This document shows, one piece after another, positions 784-15,659 of a DNA stretch of 64,000 nt (the first letter of the stretch is position 1; every line of letters starts with the position of its first letter). Source of the DNA: Amoebophrya sp. A120 (lineage: Eukaryota > Protista > Dinoflagellata); assembly GCA_905178155.1 (NCBI GenBank), contig CAJINV010000002.1, forward strand, positions 5,141,709 to 5,205,708, written 5' to 3'. Both the position numbers and the translations under genes were made by a program. The notes beneath the pieces were generated by a model. It worked only from the letters and a program-made list of their open reading frames with translations. It was not told the DNA's origin and ran no database searches.

Positions 784-791
784 AGGCAGTA
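784..791. repeat. left target-site duplication AGGCAGTA (8 bp)
   Basis: Identical to 15652-15659; lies immediately outside the TIR. Confidence 0.93.
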
Positions 792-1172
792 TATGAATGG
801 ACAAAGTACAAAAGTTCAGTATTAACTATTGCATTTTCTGAGCCGTATTTTTCATTTTCCAAAATGCAAAAACCGATTTCGATTGTCATGAAAACAATTT
901 TTTGTCATGGAGAAAACATTTCTTTGTGATGCAAAAACTAAATTCTTGAGAACGCAGAACTGCTTTCTGAAGAGCACGGATTCTATCTGAGCCACCGACT
1001 TCACTGATCCACCGAACCAACATTCTAAACACCGAAAACCAAAATATCACCAACCGAGCAAAACAACTTCAACCGAGCAAAACAAACCTTCATTTCCGGA
1101 AAATGCGAGTTCCTCTACACCGAGCTAAAATTTCGAATAGTTGTGGTTTATTACAAAACCACAACTATTCGA
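792..1172 (+). repeat. left terminal inverted repeat (381 bp)
   Basis: Reverse complement of 15271-15651, with no mismatch seen by eye. Contains reiterated ACCGA motifs (CAACCGAGCAAAACAA x2) and TGTCATG x2. Confidence 0.96.
1133..1172 (+). other. putative tyrosine-recombinase target site, left (17-bp arms, 6-bp asymmetric spacer ATTACA)
   Basis: TCGAATAGTTGTGGTTT-ATTACA-AAACCACAACTATTCGA, which is loxP/dif-like architecture. TIR homology stops exactly at its inner edge. Confidence 0.6.
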
Positions 1173-2114
1173 TTTCTCCAACACAATTGTTCAAGTTTTC
1201 AACTTAGACATCCGAAACCGACTCGCTTTCACGAACTCACGTCGCGCAATATCGGCACGCGCGACCGTGGGACCATCTTCAAAGCTCTTCATCATTTGTT
1301 CTTGGCGAAACAGCTATCGCTTCGCCATATCGTTTTTGCCTCCAAGTCCGCAGCAGAACTCACGGCGACTTGGGAGACCATATCCATCACATGGTGGGTA
1401 GAGCGAAACATTTTCAGATATGGAAGACAATCATCTTCCATCATTTGACAGTATTGTTTTTTTGCGAAGAAACTACATTCGCGAGCGAATGCAGCTTCTT
1501 CACGAGAGGACGGTGAAGGTGTTGATACAAACGCCACGTCGAAAGACGTGACGATAAAGAAGAGTCCAGGTTGTTATTTTTCTAACAAAAAAATAAAAGA
1601 TCGAAGATTGCATTTTCATAATGTAGAAGTGCTTGTCTTTCGATGAGAAGTAGATACTGATACTCGAAAGACAAAAAAGAAATGTTACGAATATTTGCGA
1701 GTCAGCAGACGTAGATGGCAAGACATCTAAGCTGCCGACTCTAAAGAAGGCCGGTGTAGCACGAAGCATTTTCGCTTCGCTGAAATCTCAGTGATTTTTC
1801 TAATCGAAAAAGAAATTGATAATTTTTTTGAAGTAAAATAAACAAATTAGCCCCATCCGATTACGCAGGAAGGATGCGGGCTTTAATCAGACCGAATTGC
1901 GGCAGCTCGAGTGGAGTTGACGAACTCATACTGATGAATATGAAATTTATATTTCTAAAAGTAGTACTGCATGTTTGTGCATAATAACTTCCGTATCTAC
2001 AGACAAAGCCAGCACTCTATCTTCAACGAGAGGTAGAAAAAAGATTACCGACAACGAAAGTCGAAATGGAAAGTTTCTGAGCACAAATACATCTCGTACG
2101 AATTTACCTTCAGA

Positions 2115-5100
2115 TTACATATTCGTGTCTAAAAAGGTAAATTCATCCAAGGTGTTGGTCCTGCTTCGCTTCGCATTGGGCGTCTCGTCATCATCCTGCT
2201 TCGCCGACTCGATGGACAGCTCGCTCATGCCGCGGGGACGCAACAACGCCGAATGGTTCCGCAACCTCATCTGCTGCTGAAAGAGCTTCACGTTGCTCGG
2301 TCCCGACAAGTTCATGCCCATGTTGTGCGACGACGAGCTGCTGCTGCGATCGCGGGTGGACTCCTCCGCGGAAGAGGATCCGGTCTGCTGCTTGACCTGC
2401 TCGGCCACCATCTTGGGATCCAGGTAGGCCTGGCAAAGACCATCGTTGTCCCAGGCGTCGGTGTTCTTGGCATCGGTGTAGAAGTTCAGGGACGCGTCCA
2501 CGTACGAGGCCTGCAGCTTGGTCGCGGCAGCGCTCAGCGCGGCGGCCGCCTTAGCAGCAGCCGTGGTCTTCTTAGCCGGGACCTCGGCACCCTTGGCGCC
2601 CGCGGGCTTGTTCAGCGGGGCCGACAAGCGGTACTCGGCGGAGAGGGAGTTCGCAAAGGCGCGGCTCGGCTCGCACTCATACCTGATAGTTTGAGATAAT
2701 GATGAGCATGACTATGAGATCATAGACAGTACATCATAAGCTATGACTATGAAGCACTTCATTAACAACAGATGATACAGAGCATGATGATGAAGATGAT
2801 GATGAAGATGATGATGAAGATGATGATGAAGATGATCATGATGAACATCAGATGACAAAAAGCATGATGATAATAAAAATACGGAATCAAGCAGTCGAAC
2901 TTCAGGTCACCCAAGCAGAGCGTGGTCATCTCGAACTTGATTCCCTTCACCTTCTTGTCGCATTTGAAGTCCAAGGTGATGGCCTTCTCTTGCAGGATCT
3001 GGCACCGCGAGGACAGCTTCATCTTCTCCATGTGGAAGTTGATGGGCACTTTGATCGGCACGACACTCACTTTCACTAATTGTTCGGAGGAGAGCGTCCA
3101 CGTCTGTCCCTGTTTCAGCCCTTTTTTGCACTGCACGGTGTAGTGACCCATGTTCAACGAAAGGCAGTCCGCCGGGAACTGATTTTTGTTGACGAAGATT
3201 TCGTTTTGAAAACAAAGTCTTTCGCAAGTGAGTGCTCGTCTTCTAAGTCTTGCCCATTTTCCTCTTCACGCTCACGTCGCGCTCACGACTAAAAAAACAT
3301 CAGAAATAAAAGTACGTCCATCAGGGCATATTGCTGCTCCTCCACCGGTTCCTTGGCCTTGGCCCGCGACTTAGCCACGCACTTCACTTGAAACCATTTG
3401 GCCTCCTCGGCCGATTTTAACTTTTCCCCTAAGGCCTCGGTCTCCTGGTTGAAAATCTCCTTCAACTGCTTCTGCTCGAGCTCGCAGGCATCTTTGTGCT
3501 TCTTGCACTTCTCTTCGTACTCCTCCTTGGCAGCGTTGACATACACCTGGTGAATAGAACCGGAAAACTGGAGGTTGAACGAACCCGGGATGAAAAGCTG
3601 GTTATCATAGGTCACTATGAATTTCTAGGAGAACGATGTCACAGCCAAATTCCAAACAATGCTCTATACTAAACATAAATATAAATATTGCAACTGCGAT
3701 ACATTCTTGGTGTGATCAGTTAAATCCAACCGAAGCGTCCCGGGAATCACGTAGAGCTGTTTTGCGAGATAGGTACTTCTACAGACGGATCGCACGCGAT
3801 CCATCGTCGAAGTGGAAGTCGCAGCTCACACACACGCTCATGGAATGGACGCAGATACTAGTTCGAATTTAAATACTCGTTGCATTCTCGCACAAACTGA
3901 AATAAAATCATAAAAAAAACCTTGGCTTTCTTGCGGGCAATCATCTCCGCCTTCATGGCTTTCTCCATGGCCTTCAAAGTGGTCTCCAAGTTGGACTTCA
4001 GCACCTTCAGATCGGCCTGGTAGTTCGCGGCCAGCGAGTGCAGCTGGTTCTTGATCTGGCGGACCTCGGGCGACATGACTTTTCCCTGAATTTCACCACT
4101 TTTCCCATCGAGGTATCCCAGCGCTTCATCAGTGGTATCGCACTCGATGGTGATCTGTGGATTATTCATAGGTAAAGTTTTCATTTTCAAATACGAACTC
4201 GCTTACATGCATTAAAACTTGCATTAGAAATTTGATCAACATGAACATCTTGATATTTGAAGACCTCGATCCCCTCCGCAAACGTGACCGTGGAGTTCAG
4301 CGTCTTGTTGTCGGCGAACCGCACGACAAAGGTACCGACCACCTTCGCGCCGTCGAAGTACGGCTTCTGCAGGTTCGCGCAGGTGCGGATCACGTTCTCG
4401 ATCTCTTTCAGCACGGAGTCGTCCAATTTCTGCTGCTCGACCAGTTTCTTACCGAAACTGAAGTCTCCGTCGTACTCGATCCTGAGTTCCTCGGGACACT
4501 TCGCAGTCACCAACGAACCGTACACGCCATCCTTGTCCTGGGGTGAGTTTTAGTTTTAGTTTAAGTGAGAGAATACTACTGGTTCGTGCGATTTGCTTTA
4601 TCTGAAAAGTTAGGACGTGACTGGAGGTAGTGCTACTGCAAGGAGAAGTTAGTATGCACTGAAATAAATCAAAATCTGAAATACGGTCCAGACAGCGCCC
4701 TGAATCTCCGGCTCCACGAATAAATCATCCTCCTCGTCGTCGGACAGCAACCCGGCATTCTTTAACATCTTTCCTTTCGGCTTCTTTTTGTTCTTGTCCA
4801 GCTTGGTCTTCCCCTTCATGGCATTTCTGCACATTTCGCTCACCAACCACACGAGGTACTGGTTGCGCACGCTATCCGATTTCTCGTCTTTCAGCCAATT
4901 CTGGCGCATCATCTGCTTGATCTCCTTCATCTGCTTCTTGTTCAAGGACACCGCGTCCGGTCCGAGCAGGAGGTGCATGAAGGTGTCCAAGATCATGTCG
5001 GTCAACGCGGGGCGGAGGTAGCGCAGTTGCAACTCGAACAGGCGGGTCCTGATGTCACAATAGATATTGATACAGATGCTGATACTGTTACTCGCAATCG

Positions 5101-7853
5101 CATTACAAAGCGAATTCGAAGTCGAGCTCGAGGCGTTCTGCTTTTACATTCACATCGAAACACACAAGACTAGTAGAATTGTCGAGTGAGAGAAAGACGA
5201 AAGCAAAACACTTGCTCGCTGCTGTTGCAGCAAGCTCGTGTGCGCAGCCGTCATCTTCAATACTTATTTCTACGTCCCCGTCTTGCTTCAGCGACAGCGT
5301 CAGCGATGCGATTGCAATGCAAAAATTCCAATTCCACTCACAGGCACATACTCAGGCAGGAGCTGCCGCTACGTCTACATCTCGAAATAGATTCTCACCA
5401 TACTGTTTACGTCGCAGCTTATTTTTGTCTTAGATATCCGCGTCACACTCACTGTCACTGCACACAGACATCAGGACGTTGTGTAGAAAAGTAGATGTAG
5501 AAGTAGTAGTAGACCACACCAACACTAACAGACTAGTAATAAAGAAAAAGCGTACTTCAGCAGCGTAGTGAACTTGCTGTCATCCTTGGAGGAACTCAGG
5601 CGCCTGATGGTCTGCAACCAGTTGGTCTGACTGCACCCGAACTCACGCCGGGCTTGGTTGATGATGTTGATCTCGCCCATACCACTGATTCCTTCGCACT
5701 GGCTCTGGTATTGTTTTGTGATTTTGTTTTCAATTTGAGTTTCATTTTCGCGAGAAATCCTGAACCATAAGATCGGATGCGAGCATCAGTTTCTATTTCA
5801 AAAATTCGCACGATCTGCTCCGCAAACCATGGCGCAACATAAAAGTAAGTACCTCGTAAAAAGCCAGCTCGTTGACTTTTTTTCCCGGGTTGTTTTTCTT
5901 GTAGGCTTTCAGTTCCGCCTCGATCTGTAATATAGTTGTGTTCATCATCATCTTCATTATCATTTTCATTATTACATCGACTTTTTCGAATCGTGAATAC
6001 CTCAGAAGCGGCAGCTACGACCTTCGCATCACATATCTCCGCAGCGATGAAGGGGAAAAAAATCGCAGGCAAGAAACAGAAGTCCGCCCTGAAGCCGAAC
6101 TTCAAAAAGACGCTGAAAAAGAAGGCAGTCGCAGCGCAGAAGGCTGTCTTGGGAAAGAAGAAACAGAAGACCATCGCAAAGCCAAGCGCCCGCAAAACGC
6201 CGAAGCGTTTGGATGTTTTTGATAGCGAAGAGCGCTCCGGGTCGCTCACGATGGGAGACTGTCTGCGGTTCGGCGACGCATTGGAAGCATCAACCGGCCG
6301 CAAGAAGGAAGCGGGCAAATTTTATAAACTCGCGTGGATTGTGGCATGCCTGACTGGCCGGCGCGGCATGGACGTAAGGCTATTGCAGCGCGGCGAATTA
6401 ACTTTGAATACCGTCCGCATCGGGAATTCAAAACTGGCGACCACAAAAGGGGGCCGGGGCAAAATCAAGAATGTGCCCATCGACCCGAGCAAAAAAACAA
6501 AGGACTTTTTGCAGGAGATGATGGACCACATGGATGACAACGGGGTCGAAAAAGATGGCCCGAATTTCAACTTTCAGAAAGAGTCATTCGAGAAGAAAAT
6601 CCGGGAAGTCCGCAAAGTCTTCGTGTGCAAAGACAAAAAATCATCCCCGCCAAGCATAATAACCTCACACACGCCGCGCAGGAGTGTGTGCTCGCACTTG
6701 TTTGCGAAGAAGGTGTCGCTCCGCACGATTATGTCAATAACTGGACACGCCAGTGTAGACACACTGCACAGATACATCCAGGGGGATTTCACATTTCAAA
6801 GACTAGCTGCAAGTAAATTAGGCGTGTGATACGATGCAGATTTTATCATGAAATCAAAAAAAACGATGAAGCTGTAGATCGACCTTGGAATGTGAAACAA
6901 AAAATTACTATACGTCGGCAAACACGGATTCGTACTTTTCGCAGAAAGTACATTTCAGCTGTCCTTGGCTCGACTCGTTGTCGAGTCTCACGAAGAGACG
7001 TAATAATTCTGGTTGCCGGTCTTGGAGAATACTCGAAAACACGAACATTCTGTAGTGTTGTATGAAGAAATAGAAATTAGAAATAGAAAATCACAAAGAT
7101 ACGTATCACCGGAGTGCTTCATAAACAACACCGCATGAAGCGCGATGAACCTTCCAGAGCTGATTGAGAGTTTCCTTCGGAACTAACTGAGAGTTGCTGG
7201 CTGCTGCAGCTACGTGGGCATTTGATACGAAACACTTCGAGCTCAAGTGGAGTTTATGTGTGTTTCATCTCTGGTCTATTCATCGGATAAACGAGAGCCG
7301 CGAATAGAGCGACTTCCTTTTTCATAAGTCAAAATTATGGCTAAGTACCTGAATCCTAAGGCCTCCCATCCCTTCGGGTCCTCCTTCAAGAATTCCTTGC
7401 CGGCTTGGAAGGAATGGTTAAGGGCGATTATTTCGAGGAACTTGTCGATGGATACGACGTAGCACAGTCTCCTCATCTGGTAGGATCCGTTCCTCATGCA
7501 GTCCAGTAAATATTGTTTATGCTTCTCATTTCGGATCATGTTCCACTTCGACTGCTTGAACTGCGGGACCAGCTCCTTCGGGATTTTCGTGCCCTGGACG
7601 AACTTGTCGTCGCGGTACCGCTTGATGAACTCGCACATGGCGGCCTTGGTCACCTGATGTTTTTTCATGTGATTATGAGAATCATGGTGCACGAGAAACA
7701 TATATAAACCACAAAACTCAACGAGGATATGCATCGACAAAAACATTGGGATGACACATCTGAAATCAAACAAATTCAGGCAAAACAGCGACGCAATACC
7801 TCGCCCTTGCGCCAGGCGCGCTTCATCTGCTCCGCCTCCAAGTCCGTCGGCAT
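2115..7853 (-). CDS. transposon cargo gene, multi-exon orphan protein (~780 aa) with coiled-coil and basic segments
   Basis: Approximate exons 7853-7800, 7654-7349, (possible micro-exon ~5604-5575), 5049-4685, 4538-~4265, ~4155-3921, 3547-3315, 3178-2883, 2683-2115. They are joined by GT-AG introns whose phases agree with the ORF track pieces. Confidence 0.72.
2784..2845. repeat. (ATGATGATGAAG)n microsatellite in an intron of the cargo gene
   Basis: Seen directly in the sequence. Confidence 0.85.
6047..6829 (+). CDS. tyrosine recombinase (phage integrase/Xer/Cre catalytic fold) with a Lys-rich N-terminal tail, intronless, 260 aa
   Basis: Full catalytic set in order: R (LTGRRGMDV), K (SKLATTK), H-x-x-R (SHTPRRS), H (ITGHAS), Y (TLHRYI). 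First ATG at 6047. Confidence 0.9.
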   Translation: MKGKKIAGKKQKSALKPNFKKTLKKKAVAAQKAVLGKKKQKTIAKPSARKTPKRLDVFDSEERSGSLTMGDCLRFGDALEASTGRKKEAGKFYKLAWIVACLTGRRGMDVRLLQRGELTLNTVRIGNSKLATTKGGRGKIKNVPIDPSKKTKDFLQEMMDHMDDNGVEKDGPNFNFQKESFEKKIREVRKVFVCKDKKSSPPSIITSHTPRRSVCSHLFAKKVSLRTIMSITGHASVDTLHRYIQGDFTFQRLAASKLGV

Positions 7854-8211
7854 GGTCTCCGTAATTTGGAGACTTTGCCCCGACGCGAGGAGCTCGATTT
7901 CCATTGTGAAAGAGATGCGTGACTAACAAATACGACAGAACCCTGCTCAGAAGCTGTGTTTTTTCATTGAAATGCGATGGAGTTGTGAGTTATTCCATGT
8001 TATTTTTATCACAAAGAGCGAGTTTTTGCATGTATCACGCAGACATTTTGCACGCGTCACGCAGACAATTTGGAGACATCATGATGGGATTTGCAAGAGC
8101 TCATTTCATTGGTGGAGCGCAAAATTTTGTGAACGTGTGATGTGCGAGAGGACGATCTTTTTTGATCCAGAACGCTCAAATAATAGAAATTCACCTTGTC
8201 CTAAAAAGGTC

Positions 8212-8346
8212 GGATTTTAGTAAATTACTAGAAATCCTTGATTTTCAAGATTTTTTTACAAAAAAAATGAGGATTTGAGCTGAAATCCTGGAAAAATGCA
8301 AAAATATTTTTGAAAATCAAGGATTTCTAGTAATTTACTAAAATCC
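8212..8346. repeat. 37-bp perfect inverted repeat with 61-bp spacer, between the transposase 3' end and the cargo gene start
   Basis: GGATTTTAGTAAATTACTAGAAATCCTTGATTTTCAA (8212-8248) and its reverse complement (8310-8346); imperfect extension TCCTAAAA/TTTTAGGA. Confidence 0.9.
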
Positions 8347-9083
8347 CACGATTTTAGGAAATGGGATTTTCACAATAAATGTCGGATATTTCATCGTTTG
8401 GGAACTGGAGGTTTCTGTGTCGGGGTGGTGAAAAATCTTGTTCGGGAAGATCAGAGCATGCCAAAATTTCTCTGGTTTATCTCTCCTCGCAACTGTGAGT
8501 GGAGTGATCGGGACCTCTTAATAAGACTCAGCTACAAGGTGGGTAGGCTGCTGGGTCGGGGAATCAAAAGCACTTTGCGCATCATCTCGAACTCAATTTA
8601 CATCCTTTTTCCTATCGGAGAGCGGGTATAATTTGCATTCAAACTCAGGGGAAGGAGGCAGCTTTCATATGAGGTCTGGGTGCTTATGTTGCGAAAAGAT
8701 CTTGGACCGAAGACGCGAGTTCCATTCTGGCAAGCTATCGCGCCACATCTACATCACTTACAACCGACAATGAATCAAGTGGCTCAGCATCATTTCCCGC
8801 ACGTTCTGAATCTGTGCGTCGTTGGTATTTGCTGCGAAGTTTCGCGTGATATTTAATGCTTCCGATCGTGAAGAATTTCATTTTTTATAATAAAAAATAC
8901 AAGTTTTCATAATTGAATTATAATTCAAATTCAATTTCAATTCGAAACAATTTTGTGTTTTTTCAAAAAAAAAACATATAAGTCTTTCAGAGACGAACAT
9001 GCTCGGCTCGTGACATCTACGTGTACACTGCGTCTGCGAATTTGTAAACAACAACTCGCAGGCGGCAGGCCCAGATGGTAGTC

Positions 9084-12000
9084 TCAGCCACGGATCGGCA
9101 TGTCGCCCAATACAGATTGATCGCTGTCGTCGGAATCCTCAACCAACTTCTCAATCTTCTTCGACTTGGTGGAGGCGATGTAGTGCGCGATCTCCCGGTA
9201 CGCAGCATCCTCCAAGTCGTCACTGACCAAGTTGTTGCTCGGCCGCTGAATCTTCAGGATATCGCACACCTTCGCGACGCAGCGCTTGCGGGCAGCGGCA
9301 ACACTAATCTTGTCGGTCATGCGACCCGCGGTGGTGCAGCCCACTCCCGTAGGTTCAAAGTCTTCATCACCAACATCAGCGGCCAGCTCGTGGACAACTC
9401 CTCTCCAGGTCGCCTGTTCGGGGCGAAATATGAAGTACACCGTGTCGGGCTGGAGCTCCGGAATCAACTGCTTCTCCGGCACCTTCGGATTATTTTTGCA
9501 AAATTGAAATCGGCATGAAGGTGTCAGTCTCTCTTCATATCTTGGTCATAATCTTCATCATCAATCAAACACACTAAAGTCGAAATGAAGTCATGACCGA
9601 AAAATCAAAAAGTAAAAATAGTACAGCAACGTGAACTTGGATCGTCCGGTGCCACGACTCTTCGCGAGACTCTCTCTCGTACGGATCCACAACAACGTGC
9701 TTCTTCTTTTCGGCCTCCGGGTCCCACTCCTTGGACGTGTCGAAGAACACTCCAGACCGCTGCATTCTCTTCTCCAACCAAAACCCCTTGTCGACGAAGA
9801 GCCAGATCCTGCCCAAAATAAAGTGCGCGCGGGCGACTTTTGCGATGGAGGCGTTGAGGAAAGAACTGGTGCTGAGCTTCTTGTTGTCCTCCGCGGATCT
9901 CGAAGCCCAGTGGGACACGGTCATCACCGAGCTCACCTCCTCGTTCAAGAGGAAGCAGTCGTACTTGTCGGCTTTGTCCATCAAGTCCTTCGGAATCTCT
10001 TGCAAGCCGATGGCTGAGGAATTCTTCTTCCTAGTCTTAAACAGGCCCAGGTAGAAACTGGCCGGGAAATCAGAATCGTTGACGAGGTATTTGGTCGTTT
10101 TTGGCTGCGGCTTCGTACAGCACCCCGGAATGTCCCCTTTTTTCATCGGGACGTACGTCGCGCGCTGCATGTGGCCTCGATTACCCGTGCGAGAGAAGCA
10201 GAAATAAGGTGGTCCATCCATGCGATGGGCGACCTTTTTGACGTGGATGTTGCCAAGCTTCACAAAGGAGTTGTCGAACAATTTGGTCCCAACTCCGCCG
10301 TACCACTGGCGGAAAAACGGCGTGTTCGGAATGTGCATGCGGATGGCGTCCGGAATGGTAAGGGCAACCTGAGTGTAGAGTTTCGCTGTAATTCGTTTAT
10401 CAGTGCGCACAGCTACAGTACCAAGCGAGTATTGAACTTGAACTTGAAGAGCACACAACTACAGAATGCAAACGCACTAGTTTCACGGAGTTGCACATTG
10501 GTATTTGAAGCGACATGAAAAAAAAAATACCTTCTGCGGAATCAGAGGACAGTAGTCGGCCACGTTCAAGTCATTGCGCACACTGGTCTTTCGTTTCCGA
10601 AACTCTGCCTTCGCGGCGATCAGGTACGGGTGGTGCTGGAGAGAATCGAAGGGGTGGTTCATCACAACCCTGACATCGCACGAGTTCTGCACCATCGCCT
10701 TCGAATGTCGGGGATCGAAAAGACACTTCCACTGCTCGAGGAGTTTCTGGTACTCCAAAAACGAGATGGGCTCACTCCGCGCGATGGAGGTGCGGATAGC
10801 AGCCCTTTCCTGCCGCATGTTTGGGCACAGTCTTTTGAACTCCATCGTTGTACTGTGAAGCGATTCGACGTACTGCATGCAGGGACTGCTCAGGACGAAG
10901 ATGGGTCCGGCCAGGCTGAACAGCTTATCCGTCATCGTTCCCTTTTCCTGCATCTCCGTCAAGTCCTTTTTCAGTTGTTCAATGAAATAAATCAAAAACG
11001 GATCAAGGGCGTCGTGCTCCAAATCGAGCAGCAGCTCGGCACACCGTTTCTTCGTATCGTTGCAGAAGAGCTTGTTCAAGATGTACGGGAAGATGTACAG
11101 CTGCACTTCCCGATAAACCGTTTTGCAGAAAAACGAGTGCTATCCTGTGCAAAAATATCGCACTAGTTCTACTTCTACTTCTAGATCTAATATAAATAGC
11201 ATGACAAATTTTCTCAGCACGAGAAATCGAATTTGTAATGCGGATTTGGTTGAGGTTGAGCTTGAAGTTGAAGTTGAAGCTGAGCTTGGAGCTGAGCTTC
11301 GCGCTCACCTGGCAAAGGTGATCGTCAAGGTGAACGTGAAACAGGAGACTTGTGATGCATGGTTACGAGTAGGAGTACTACGAGTGCGATATTTTTGCAG
11401 AGGATAAATATGCCATGGTCAGCGCATTCATATCAGAAGGCGCTCTCAGGAGGAGCTGGTGAAACAGCCGCTTGATGGTGTCCAAGGGGGTCGGCGCGCA
11501 CCGGTTTGGGACCATCTCCTCAAACTTCGCGTCGGAGAAGGCGATCTTCGGGTCGCGGATGGTCCGCGCATGCGAATGCTGCAGCTTTTCCAAAACGGCC
11601 TCAGCGCTGGTGACCTGCTTCCAAAAGTCTTCGTCGCCGGCAGCAGCCTTTGCCTTTGCGAAGATGGCCTTAGTTTCTTTCTTTCGATCCTTTTCCGACA
11701 TGCCCGCAATACCGTTCTGGATTGCAAGCTTATTCTCCTTCAACGCGGCGAGAGTCGGGTGCGCAGTCATCCAGCGGTGCTCCATGTGCTGCGGAATCTT
11801 GATGTCATCAAACCACAGCTTGGTCGCCTGTTGGATCTTGGAAACACCTGAAAGTGAAGTTTTTTTATGAAATAGAAAAAGGAATGCAACAATAGACGCA
11901 GCTTGACTTGAGCGTCGAAATTATACACGAACATCCTTATTCTCGTACTCAGTAATGAGCAAAAAAACAAAAGCACCAACATATCACTATCATCTTCATC

Positions 12001-14381
12001 GCAATTTATTTTCATACTATAACTACCTTCTTTGAATCCGTTTTTCTGGAAGTCCGCGATGTCCATGATGTCCTTGGCCAAGATGTGCAGTTGATGGGCC
12101 TGACACACGTATTGCAAAATAAACGTCTGCAGAAGGCGGTGTCCACCGGGATTATCCTTGGTCTGTTTGATCCTCTCTAAGTTACACGCATGTGAGTAGA
12201 GGCGCAGTCGTCGGTAGGCCTTCAGGATGTTGCTCCCGGCGTCGGAATGGCAAAGCCAAAAACACAGGGGGTCACCGGGATGATACTTCGTCGTTGCGCC
12301 CGGAAGCGGCGCGAGGTTACCGATGATGGCGTATATGGCGGAAAGCACGTTGTCTGCATCAGATCCGCCTCGTACCCCTTTCGGCGTGTACTGCCGCAGC
12401 CGGACCTTGCCGGGAGTCCCGATCACTCCAAACTCCGCCGTAGCAATGACAAATTCGAGCTGAAAGAAGCCTTCGGTGTCAAAAGTCGTACCGTCAGGTC
12501 CGAGTCGAAAAAAAACCACCTTGCGCGGGGTCGGAGGAGTAATAGACAAACTCAGCTGCTCCTTACGCTTCGCCTGGTCCACGTGAAATAGGAGCACGTC
12601 CTTGCCGCCGTCCTTGATGTTGAAGTCCTTGCCCTTGGCAATCATGTCCCAGCACGCCGTGTTACCTGCGTGAAAGAACGTTAAAGTTTTCAAATGTTCC
12701 ATTTTACCGCGCACGTGGATGACAGTCACTTTTTTAAAATTTTCATCATCACCTCTTGCAATTTTTTTCATCATCGCCTATCGCTCAGCTCCGTATCAGT
12801 TGCAGTCAGTTGCAGTAGCAGTTGCAGTCAGTTGCAGTAGCAGTTGCAGTAGCAGTTGCAGTTCGAATTCCTATTACTAGATTTAAAAAACCAAAAAAAT
12901 TTGTACCGCATATATCGTCGATTTCGTTTCTCATGCCCATTTCGAGCGCGCGGTCATAAGCATCTTCTTTGCGCAGCGCGTACTTCGTGAAGGCGGCGTC
13001 GTCTGCTTTACGCTTTTTCTCCGCGTCCGCTTGCTCAGAAACCACCTCAGCAATTCCTTTGTTGTTCTGCAGCACGCAACCGTGCTCACCTTCCTTCTTA
13101 TCCTTCGACGAGTCCGTGTGCTGCAACCGCGACAAGGCGGAAGACACAAGCTTTGCGTCAAACAGCTGCTGCAAAAACTCGACCTTTTTCCGCGCAGTGA
13201 CGGGAGAACGGCCAATCACGAAACCGACGTACTCGACCTGTTCGTCAGGCGTGAGAGTGGCAAAATACGACCACTCCACGGCGTCTCTCCACTCTTCCTC
13301 CACGAAAGCAGGGCGCTTGTACTTTTTATCGTTGAAGGTGAAGGTCAAGTCCTCGTCTTTCGTTTTTACTTCACCCTCTTCGACCATGACATGGATGGAA
13401 ATCCGGTATCTGATCAAAATTGTTTTTGTTTTTCCTTGATGTTGATGTTGATAATTGTTGCTATTGATTATGAGTGTCATTGTGTATGCGTTTATTTTGA
13501 TCTCGAGGTACAGGCATTCTCACATGCGTCGAGTAAAAGTTTAATCTTGCAACCAAATCTAAATTTCGACCGACCTAGTCTCGAGCTCCTCGATGACAAA
13601 CTCCTGGAGCCGCTTGGTGCGCTGGTACTTGTCGGCCATGACGTCGGCGCGCGCGTTTTTCTCCACCTTCTCCTCCTCGGTATCCATGTCATCGATCAAA
13701 ATGTCGCTTTTCTTGAAAAGACCCTTCTCTTCGTGCGCCGTCTTGCAATACCTGAAAAAAAGTTTTTCATTGTCGTGATGATATTTCTGTTTCAAAAACA
13801 ACAGCCGCACATGTTGACTGAAAATAGAAATTGAAATAGTATGTCTTGCATGATGAACAAAGTCTGCACTACTTCGAATGGTAGACAAAAGAGCACGTCG
13901 AGTTTAAGTAACAATATATGTACTGGCTCCACTTCTTCCGAATTTGTTCCACCGTGGGCACGGGGATCGGCAAGTACTGGGGTCGCAGAAACTCCGCCTC
14001 GTCGCGCGCAAGTTCGGCAAAAACTGTCGCGCCCTCCTTGAGCACGTCGTGCACATGTTCGAATGTGCTGCAAGACCGCACCATATCGAGGATGGGGTAC
14101 TCCAATTCGTCGCGTTTGTAGCAAGTAGTCCCGGCGACCAAGTGCTTGCACTCTTGCGCGGCAAAAATTTCTTTGTTATTTTTGCGCTTCTTGTCCGGTG
14201 GCGGCATCCGGTGCATGCCCTCAATCAAACGTTGCACATGCTCCGAGGATCTCATGTTCTCGTCCTCTATCGTGTGCTCCAACGCCTTGAGGAGCAGGTC
14301 GGCCGGCAGCGAAGGCTGCGCCGACGAAGAGTTAGAGTTCCACATCTTTTTATAATTCTTCATTTTCTCGTCAAAATCCAT
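9084..14381 (-). CDS. hAT-superfamily-like DDE transposase, about 9 exons, ~1,300 aa
   Basis: Approximate exons 14381-13924, 13752-13575, 13408-12907, 12666-12027, 11848-~11413, ~11345-11309, ~11144-10531, 10369-9638, 9483-9084; most junctions are GT-AG with matching phase. Motifs in hAT order: D1 (RLGPDGTT), D2 (HSDAGSNILKA), CxxH (CQAHQLHILAKD), RW (EHRWMT), catalytic E (LSSPCMQYVESLHS, cf. the PxSxxxxERxFS motif). Confidence 0.85.
12796..12862. repeat. (CAGTTG/CAGTAG)n hexamer microsatellite in a transposase intron
   Basis: Seen directly in the sequence. Confidence 0.85.
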
Positions 14382-14425
14382 TTTATTTTTATAAACTTCT
14401 CCCTAGAAAAAGATTTTTTTTTTCC

Positions 14426-14493
14426 AACTGATGCGAAGGGTAAGACAAGCATCAAAAGCAACTGATGCGAAGGGTAAGACAAGCATCAAAAGC
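14426..14493. repeat. perfect 34-bp tandem duplication just upstream of the transposase ATG
   Basis: AACTGATGCGAAGGGTAAGACAAGCATCAAAAGC x2. Confidence 0.9.
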
Positions 14494-15270
14494 AAATGAA
14501 TCGAAAAGGAAAACCAAAAGCAAAACGACAACTTCCAGCCAGATGATCCTCTTCATGCTTTGATCAATCCATCACGACAGATCTTGGAGCTTTGATCGAG
14601 ATCACTTCGTGTTTGGATCCAGGAACAAAATCATCAAAACCGTTGTCATCCATCTTGCGCGAAAAACGAAACCGTCATCATCTATCTTGCGCAAACTAAC
14701 GCGACGAAAACAAGAGCAGGAGAGTCGAACAAGCTTTCTTCTGCATGAGATCTTTTCTGTTTCGCGCCCCAGACTCTGCGCATCTACTTAGTTTTCTCCT
14801 GTGCGTTTTGCTTTTACTTTCTGCTTCTCATTCTATTTATATTTTCTACTTCTACTTCTGCTTTCTCTTCTACTTTCTACTTCTCCTCCCCGAAACTCAT
14901 GCTCGACATAGCAGCGTCGTGGCCGCTCCTGCTGTGGCTATCCCCTTGGTTGGGTCGCTCCTGATATTGTTGTTTTTTTCTCATTAACATTGACATTCTC
15001 TTTATACGCGAAAGACATCATCGGAGGCGCATATGTAAAATCTCAAACTCAAAGTCAAAACCAAAAGCCAAAAGCATTGCAACTCTGAAAATGCGGACGA
15101 CTCAAACGCTCCGCTATCATAATGATCAGCTCAATGAAACAACAAAAACATAACCTGCTTTCCCCTTCTAGTTCTCTGCCATTCGTGTGCTTCGCCTTTC
15201 GCTTTTCACTTCCAGCCTGCTATAACTGAAACGCATTTCCACAAACCCGCCATAGCTGAAGCCGCATAGT

Positions 15271-15310
15271 TCGAATAGTTGTGGTTTTGTAATAAACCAC
15301 AACTATTCGA
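15271..15310 (-). other. putative tyrosine-recombinase target site, right (spacer TGTAAT, inverted relative to the left site)
   Basis: TCGAATAGTTGTGGTTT-TGTAAT-AAACCACAACTATTCGA. Confidence 0.6.
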
Positions 15311-15651
15311 AATTTTAGCTCGGTGTAGAGGAACTCGCATTTTCCGGAAATGAAGGTTTGTTTTGCTCGGTTGAAGTTGTTTTGCTCGGTTGGTGATATT
15401 TTGGTTTTCGGTGTTTAGAATGTTGGTTCGGTGGATCAGTGAAGTCGGTGGCTCAGATAGAATCCGTGCTCTTCAGAAAGCAGTTCTGCGTTCTCAAGAA
15501 TTTAGTTTTTGCATCACAAAGAAATGTTTTCTCCATGACAAAAAATTGTTTTCATGACAATCGAAATCGGTTTTTGCATTTTGGAAAATGAAAAATACGG
15601 CTCAGAAAATGCAATAGTTAATACTGAACTTTTGTACTTTGTCCATTCATA
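15271..15651 (-). repeat. right terminal inverted repeat (381 bp)
   Basis: Reverse complement of 792-1172. Confidence 0.96.
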
Positions 15652-15659
15652 AGGCAGTA
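15652..15659. repeat. right target-site duplication AGGCAGTA
   Basis: Identical to 784-791. Confidence 0.93.

Follow-up and report, generated by a model that had tools for sequence, protein, structure and literature searches.

Paired palindromes at the inner edges of long terminal repeats in a hAT-like transposon family of Amoebophrya sp. A120: candidate core sites of the element's own tyrosine recombinase

The window analysed here, a stretch of 64,000 nucleotides from Amoebophrya sp. A120, contains a transposon that encodes a tyrosine recombinase beside a transposase, and whose long terminal inverted repeats (TIRs) both finish, on their inner side, in the same 40-bp palindrome, hereafter S. 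We favour, with moderate confidence, the reading that S serves the element's own tyrosine recombinase as its core recombination site. Several lines of evidence argue for it: the anatomy of S is canonical and far beyond chance; sites of the window type are tied to recombinase genes or to one 4.4-kb non-autonomous family; the end motif and S are all that survives among otherwise unalignable TIRs; the spacers vary by lineage, match within an element and sit between arm cores at a fixed distance; the recombinase keeps all its catalytic residues and a tyrosine-recombinase catalytic fold; signals of the transposase type are separate from S, and short derivatives with the same termini carry no recognisable S; the two arms of an element evolve in concert, with the identity boundary at S; transposase and recombinase loci are consistently paired, in A120 and probably in Amoebophrya sp. 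AT5.2; and there is a precedent among the transposons of ciliates.

The element and its family in the A120 genome

The window copy (W; other copies are named after the numbered contigs of the same genome, C1, C2, C9 and so on) is an element of 14,860 bp at positions 792-15651, bounded by a perfect 381-nt TIR of which S is the innermost 40 nt in each arm (Table 1). A sequence-only reading of this DNA had described perfect 17-6-17 palindromes at 1133-1172 and 15271-15310 with their spacers inverted, and the description is exact to the letter; the perfect arms measure 17 nt, or 18 nt at the right site. No other perfect palindrome in the 64-kb window has arms of at least 12 nt and a spacer of at most 10 nt, the longest palindrome arm in 20 shuffles of the window being 12 nt, and the S pattern with up to 3 mismatches is matched twice in the window against 0.00 times expected from 100 dinucleotide shuffles. 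The recombinase gene is on the plus strand and lies between the conserved minus-strand exons of 2765-7989, for which a Pfam search returned no family.

Table 1. Coordinates of the features of the window copy.
Feature	Position	Strand	Remarks
Left target-site duplication	784-791		8 bp, AGGCAGTA; same 8-mer at 15652-15659
Right target-site duplication	15652-15659		8 bp, identical to 784-791
Left TIR arm	792-1172	+	381 nt, 100% complementary to 15271-15651
Right TIR arm	15271-15651	-	381 nt
Terminal motif TATGAATGGACAAA	792-805	+	Candidate transposase cleavage/recognition end; conserved island among the TIRs of six lineages
ACCGA array	872-1123	+	Seven one-way pentamers; candidate subterminal transposase-binding repeats
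Left S	1133-1172	+	Arms of 17 nt around an ATTACA spacer; candidate core site for the tyrosine recombinase that the element encodes
Right S	15271-15310	+	Arms of the left site, spacer TGTAAT; inverted relative to left S
Minus-strand exons, no assigned function	2765-7989	-	Conserved, with tblastn matches to the C9 and C14 copies; flank the recombinase gene
Tyrosine recombinase gene	6047-6829	+	260 aa; Pfam Phage_integrase, E = 2e-8
Predicted hAT-like (Hermes-fold) DDE transposase gene	9087-13519	-	Multi-exon; homologous to P0001 and P0002

Perfect 8-bp target duplications surround the W, C9 and C14 copies, and their sequences are unrelated from one copy to another. The C16 copy (C16:1570532-1587469), which has 98.5% identical arms and a 2.2-kb insertion relative to the window copy, lacks such a matching duplication; two copies having exchanged sequence could be the reason.

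The combination of TIR, S and recombinase recurs in at least eight diverged lineages of the A120 genome. Genome-wide queries found 13 recombinase loci and 11 transposase loci, and every one of the 11 is paired with a recombinase locus 4-6 kb away on the opposite strand. The closest homologues of both proteins are in Amoebophrya sp. AT5.2, where the recombinase (g2071) and the transposase (g2073) are near neighbours by gene numbering. A genome-wide search with the S pattern (26 specified positions, 3 mismatches allowed) gave 21 places against none for a reversed control. Inverted pairs of S, 13-23 kb apart, surround recombinase genes on C2, C16, C9, C14, C10, C12 (two elements) and C3; single S ends are present on C15, at the contig end, and on C1, beside an assembly gap; and three further sites fall in the 4.4-kb non-autonomous family. 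Sites of the window type were found nowhere outside these two settings, recombinase genes and the 4.4-kb family. Three autonomous elements, namely C15:615364-628409 and those of the C13:2524794 and C12:1224046 recombinase loci, have no S matching the pattern; the C15:615364 element, the C13 element, the three elements on C12 and the short derivatives described below were judged from coordinates and matched letters. The sequence-only reading had also raised cassette exchange, in which elements sharing TIR and site would differ in their interior; no such case was found, and the idea is left without support.

The W and C1 copies are 99.95% identical, and the family has therefore moved recently. 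The C1 copy (C1:2316023-2322220) corresponds at this identity to window positions 792-6710, followed by a gap of 100 N and the outer 179 nt of the other arm, and may be either a collapsed assembly or a 6.2-kb deletion derivative. Depth in public contigs (two runs of one sample) amounts to about four arms and about two cores, which fits the W and C1 copies, and, as regards C1, read depth agrees with two arms and with a left 5 kb that is present twice. No published description of this transposon family was found in the literature searched, and the A120 genome paper reported no transposase in A120 (PMC7789003).

The 4.4-kb non-autonomous family has TATGAACGGACAAA termini and occurs at C2:4599045-4603497, C3:1770129-1774524, C6:1969719-1974171 and at least eight more loci. 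Its variant of S has the spacer AGGGAG and a degenerate inner arm and lies about 880-930 nt from the terminus; usually one S is recognisable per element, and both are visible in C3:1770129-1774524. The terminal 14-mer matches the genome 75 times and the control 11 times, and many of the genomic matches form inverted pairs 0.35-2.1 kb apart. Such MITE-like pairs are found at C1:3950818-3951565, C10:609683-610034, C14:463503-464031, C2:1973747-1975663, C4:2560158-2562074 and C29:144377-146487. Five of the six short families defined by 14-mer pairs have no recognisable S among their matched letters, and one 1.2-kb pair (C1:4844949-4846153) has a single degenerate S-like match. At C2:10398679-10398986 the outermost 308 nt of an arm of C9 type (88% identity) stand alone, the part with the palindrome being absent.

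Conservation of the palindrome and of the two enzymes

An alignment of TIRs from six lineages contains only two conserved islands, the outer 14 nt (TATGAATGGACAAA-like) and S, the rest being unalignable. Since S has been kept while synonymous sites of the recombinase have become saturated (pS 0.8-0.9), it is held by selection. Twelve variants of the site have in common a 14-nt arm core, AGTTGTGGTTT, and conservation is higher in the outer arm than in the inner one. Changes in the arms are mostly one-sided, with one symmetric T-to-A change; one-sided change within a conserved sequence indicates that S is read by a protein rather than kept for base pairing.

The twelve variants have nine different spacers between them, asymmetric in every variant, and in 8/8 elements the spacer is the same at both ends. 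Read from the outside inward, seven of the nine begin and end with A; the exceptions are the variants of the 4.4-kb-family type, which end in G, and one spacer that begins with T. Arm cores are intact at 15 sites, and in every one of these the distance from core to core is exactly 12 nt, where 6-20 nt had been allowed. The sequence-only reading had named variable spacer length between copies as an observation that would count against it, and no such variation is seen; its identification of a tyrosine-recombinase site design agrees with the simple core-site anatomy of S, with the constant spacing at these 15 sites and with the recombinase encoded alongside. A protelomerase or hairpin-telomere site was considered and rejected, as it needs a fully palindromic centre. 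The half-site of S is absent elsewhere inside the elements, apart from extra copies adjoining S in C9 and C10: half-sites (AACCACAAC...) stand about 45-60 nt outside S in the arms of both copies, and C10 has one more at its left end, immediately inward of S. Their positions in the pieces examined are 1339-1351 in L021 and 1459-1471 and 1542-1554 in L041. These extra half-sites are similar to accessory arms in FRT or IRS sites. A metagenome scan with the core of S returned 13 matches, all judged to be chance, with extended arms in 0/13.

An alignment of the recombinase with five homologues has no variation at the Arg, Lys, His-x-x-Arg, His and Tyr positions, and recombinases of the aligned lineages are 48-95% identical to that of the window copy. 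Between lineages pN is 0.24-0.35 against the pS given above; this ratio, together with the invariant residues, means that the protein is under purifying selection and that its catalytic residues have been kept. A lysine-rich, disordered stretch (residues 1-62) is followed by the catalytic domain, modelled by AlphaFold over residues 63-260 with a pLDDT of about 85-95, and the modelled fold matches the catalytic domains of HP1, P2, Cre, XerA and XerH; no recognisable core-binding domain was found in the model or by fold comparison. A metagenome scan with the recombinase alignment returned no relatives. A recombinase with the R-K-H-R-H/W-Y catalytic set, as expected of the cognate enzyme of a simple core site, is thus encoded together with S.

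The transposase is probably hAT-like. The proteins P0001 and P0002, to which it is homologous, are 1300-2200 aa long, and in the C14 copy it is a single intact ORF of 1052 aa. The model of this C14 protein is poor overall (pLDDT 56) and good over its first 300 residues; in a Foldseek search with it the best 11 matches are all to the Hermes transposase, with a probability of 1.00, E = 2e-4 and a TM score of about 0.3. A CxxH motif is present in the window transposase ORF and an HRWNS motif in the homologues P0001 and P0002, and the Atlas look-alikes of the protein belong to the DUF659, ZBED1 and hAT families, all of them sub-threshold. We call it hAT-like because the Hermes fold, the two motifs, the Atlas look-alikes and the 8-bp duplications agree, and do not assign it to hAT, since the curated sequence-family test (Dimer_Tnp_hAT, DUF659 and others) failed: Pfam has no family for the window transposase ORFs, the intact C14 ORF or six homologues. 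A PDB sequence search with the transposase alignment gave no useful match. The TIRs depart from the short ones of hAT elements (about 10-25 bp), measuring 267-497 nt here and about 900 nt in the 4.4-kb family.

Signals suited to such a transposase are present outside S. The pentamer ACCGA occurs five to eight times per arm in W, C16, C9, C14 and C10, and twice in C3, at about 20 times the frequency of the interior background; almost all copies are on one strand, the single opposite-strand copy being in C14, and the array of the right arm of W is at 15320-15571. Oriented subterminal binding repeats are the classic layout of hAT elements such as Ac and Hermes. The end motif and the ACCGA repeats are better candidates than S for binding by the transposase.

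This bears on the possibility, which we regard as rather unlikely, that S is a binding site for some other protein: the transposase itself, the product of the third gene or a host factor, for instance as an inner site for transpososome assembly or an enhancer, with the recombinase acting elsewhere or only as a DNA-binding or regulatory protein. A dimer-binding palindrome, its spacer fixed in length and free in sequence, would suit any dimeric DNA-binding protein, a variant of S is kept some 900 nt from the termini of the 4.4-kb non-autonomous family, the recombinase is without a core-binding domain, and hAT elements (Ac/Ds, Hermes) need long subterminal regions. Against these points, the arms already hold hAT-style oriented repeats and a conserved end motif; short derivatives have the same termini without S; the recombinase, whose catalytic residues are under purifying selection, would be left with no candidate site, the half-site being found nowhere else in the elements. 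Some of the same observations were counted against S as a core site, namely the missing core-binding domain, with arms of 15-17 nt that are long for one catalytic domain; the three autonomous elements without a pattern-matching site; and the retention of an S variant in the 4.4-kb non-autonomous family, which may point to a need for S in cis beyond the recombinase.

Concerted evolution of the arms and the proposed role of S

The two arms of an element evolve in concert. Arm lengths in the six elements read are 381, 384, 408, 497, 372 and 265 nt, and in all six the identity between arms stops 0-5 nt from the inner edge of S; in W it stops at base 1172 on the left and 15271 on the right, so that the claim of the sequence-only reading that TIR homology ends at the palindrome holds for W and extends to six lineages. 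Within an element the arms are 100% (W) and 98.5% (C16) identical without gaps, between these two elements they are 90-91% identical with 53 gap columns in addition, and the adjacent interior of the two elements is 93.5-96% identical.

Arms of older copies have drifted, being 92.5% identical at aligned positions in C9 and 94.5% in C10 (90% and 82% when gaps are counted). As both copies have an intact S and open recombinase frames, homogenisation is not continuous in place, and this drift was counted against S as a core site. The C15 copy, at a contig end, follows C9 colinearly at 98.8% identity, most of the mismatches being within the arm; its left arm is equal to the right arm of C9 (1 mismatch in 405) and not to the left arm. 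The pattern is the one that inversion or arm replacement predicts. The C9 and C15 arm types differ only 43-268 nt from the terminus, and 135 identical nt adjoin S; as proof of a crossover at S the arm swap was therefore rejected, since its inner breakpoint may be anywhere in those 135 nt, and a patch that does not single out S was likewise entered against the core-site reading. A gradient of arm identity away from S was noted and is ambiguous because the repeat-rich middle of the arm is more mutable. The public data (two runs of one sample, as de Bruijn contigs from Logan) break at positions 792 and 1172, show no product of recombination and are uninformative on inversion or empty sites.

That the boundary of arm identity coincides with S in six lineages would also suit a purely structural role, in which S forms a cruciform or hairpin that halts branch migration or conversion tracts, or an RNA hairpin at transcript ends, and merely marks where host recombination stops homogenising the arms. 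The perfect 17-bp stem fits this account, and conversion patches in the arms need no recombinase. Nevertheless we consider it improbable: it is the sequence, not just the pairing, that is conserved across lineages; many variants break the pairing beside the spacer or in the inner arm; and compensatory changes would be expected after synonymous saturation, whereas one symmetric double change is all that is seen.

Under the preferred reading, with S as the core site of the recombinase, two recombinase-binding arms with the AGTTGTGGTTT core would lie on either side of a 6-bp crossover spacer left unread by the protein. The hAT-like DDE transposase would move the element, acting on the outer 14-nt motif and the ACCGA repeats and making the 8-bp target duplications, and the recombinase would be confined to S. 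Recombination of the inverted S pair in cis would flip the 14-kb core; the orientation of the sites agrees here with the sequence-only reading, which had predicted inversion and not excision within one copy. If the left S of one copy recombined with the right S of another in antiparallel alignment, two elements would result, each with both arms derived from one parental arm; alternatively, gene conversion might start at S and run only outward into homology. Either route would leave everything outside S identical on both sides, with identity ending at the inner edge of S, and exchange between left and right S sites would fit the concerted evolution of the arms, including their indels. We infer both that binding and cutting of S are the work of the recombinase and that the homogenisation of the arms is due to it.

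We put forward only tentatively, as a possibility that we rate below an even chance, the wider proposal that in DDE transposons long, perfectly matched terminal repeats are the product of built-in lox-like recombination, which also maintains them. If true, it would explain the long TIRs of recombinase-bearing alveolate transposons across superfamilies, Tc1/mariner in ciliates and hAT-like here.

The converse arrangement, in which the recombinase moves the element in the fashion of a Crypton or integrase with S as its attachment site, is very improbable, for although the recombinase is intact and always present, an inverted S pair cannot excise a circle, S lies 227-452 nt inside the true ends of the six elements read and about 880-930 nt inside those of the 4.4-kb family, 8-bp duplications of unrelated sequence are typical of DDE transposition, and a transposase of Hermes fold is at hand. 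Membership in the Cryptons was ruled out on the long TIRs, the 8-bp duplications and the DDE transposase.

Comparison with known systems and minor features of the element

The closest known relatives are the ciliate elements Tec1/Tec2 of Euplotes and Sardine/Thon of Paramecium, which represent the same design on a different transposase superfamily and combine a Tc1/mariner DDE transposase with a tyrosine recombinase (PMC3464196; PMC3212892). Shared features are the pairing of DDE transposase with tyrosine recombinase, the long TIRs and an alveolate host. The transposases of the ciliate elements are of the IS630/Tc1 type with DD35E and TA targets, whereas that of the A120 family appears to be Hermes-fold and hAT-like and is accompanied by varied 8-bp duplications. 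The TIRs of Sardine and Thon, from 425 to about 700 bp long, have internal palindromes (PMC3464196), and the whole TIR has been described as palindromic, in contrast to the compact 17-6-17 site found here exactly at the inner TIR edge. Anchois, a relative without a recombinase, has short plain TIRs (PMC3464196), and the pair of cases, Sardine and Thon with a recombinase and long palindromic TIRs against Anchois with neither, is the precedent that we count in favour of S as a core site. The presumed role of the recombinase in the ciliate elements is the resolution of intermediates (PMC3464196; PMC3212892); no recombinase site is defined for them in these two papers, whereas the A120 family presents a sharply defined candidate.

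S shares with loxP/Cre, FRT/Flp and dif/XerCD its inverted arms and short asymmetric spacer, which is free in sequence but matches between partners, and in these systems inverted sites give inversion. It differs in having arms of 15-17 nt rather than 11-13 nt, a better conserved outer arm, and a recombinase of 260 aa without a core-binding domain. The yeast 2-micron plasmid encodes Flp and carries FRT inside 599-bp inverted repeats, recombination between which flips the unique region. Both it and the A120 family are eukaryotic selfish elements with two identical long inverted repeats, each containing a site for a tyrosine recombinase, or in our case a candidate one; the 2-micron plasmid is circular with FRT within the repeat, whereas here the element is a chromosomal transposon and the site is at the inner boundary of the repeat. 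Amplification of the Futcher type, known from the 2-micron plasmid, is not obviously possible in a chromosome. In Tn4430, of the Tn3 family (TnpI/IRS), the DDE transposase is accompanied by a tyrosine recombinase with an internal site of its own, such sites sometimes having accessory half-sites. The A120 family resembles it in the pairing of enzymes and in the extra half-sites of C9 and C10; unlike that bacterial, replicative element, in which a single res/IRS beside the recombinase gene serves cointegrate resolution, it has two sites, one at each TIR edge and inverted relative to each other.

A DDE transposase is also joined to a Crypton-type recombinase in MarCry-1_FO of Fusarium, a Mariner-Crypton fusion moved by its DDE transposase, with TIRs and a TA duplication (PMC3212892). 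That element is a single family with 16-bp TIRs and no reported recombinase sites, whereas the A120 pairing is old and has diversified, and it goes with long TIRs. The present family supplies a candidate site that is compact, conserved and amenable to experiment and whose spacer varies naturally; the prediction is clear, namely inversion of the core and regeneration of the arms with a boundary exactly at S. It also documents a recently mobile hAT-like family in a genome reported to be without transposase (PMC7789003). If the recombinase is active, a small enzyme with 40-bp sites and many distinct spacers could be a possible source of orthogonal recombination tools.

Several smaller features lie within the window copy. 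Close to the left end of the core is a GAT/GAA-rich, low-complexity coding stretch (2770-2885), and close to its right end a 34-bp tandem repeat of about three copies (14425-14526). A hairpin-like inverted repeat at 8194-8364, whose 64-nt arms are 88% complementary and enclose a loop of 43 nt, may be a further small foldback insertion, beside the insert of 266 bp with 39-nt imperfect terminal inverted repeats at 11141-11406. This insert exactly separates the minus-strand transposase exons 10486-11139 and 11381-11920, and the 1052-aa ORF of the C14 copy is uninterrupted at that point. The A120 genome is known for transposon-derived introns, and the 266-bp insert looks like an introner-type MITE acting as an intron within the transposon's own transposase gene.
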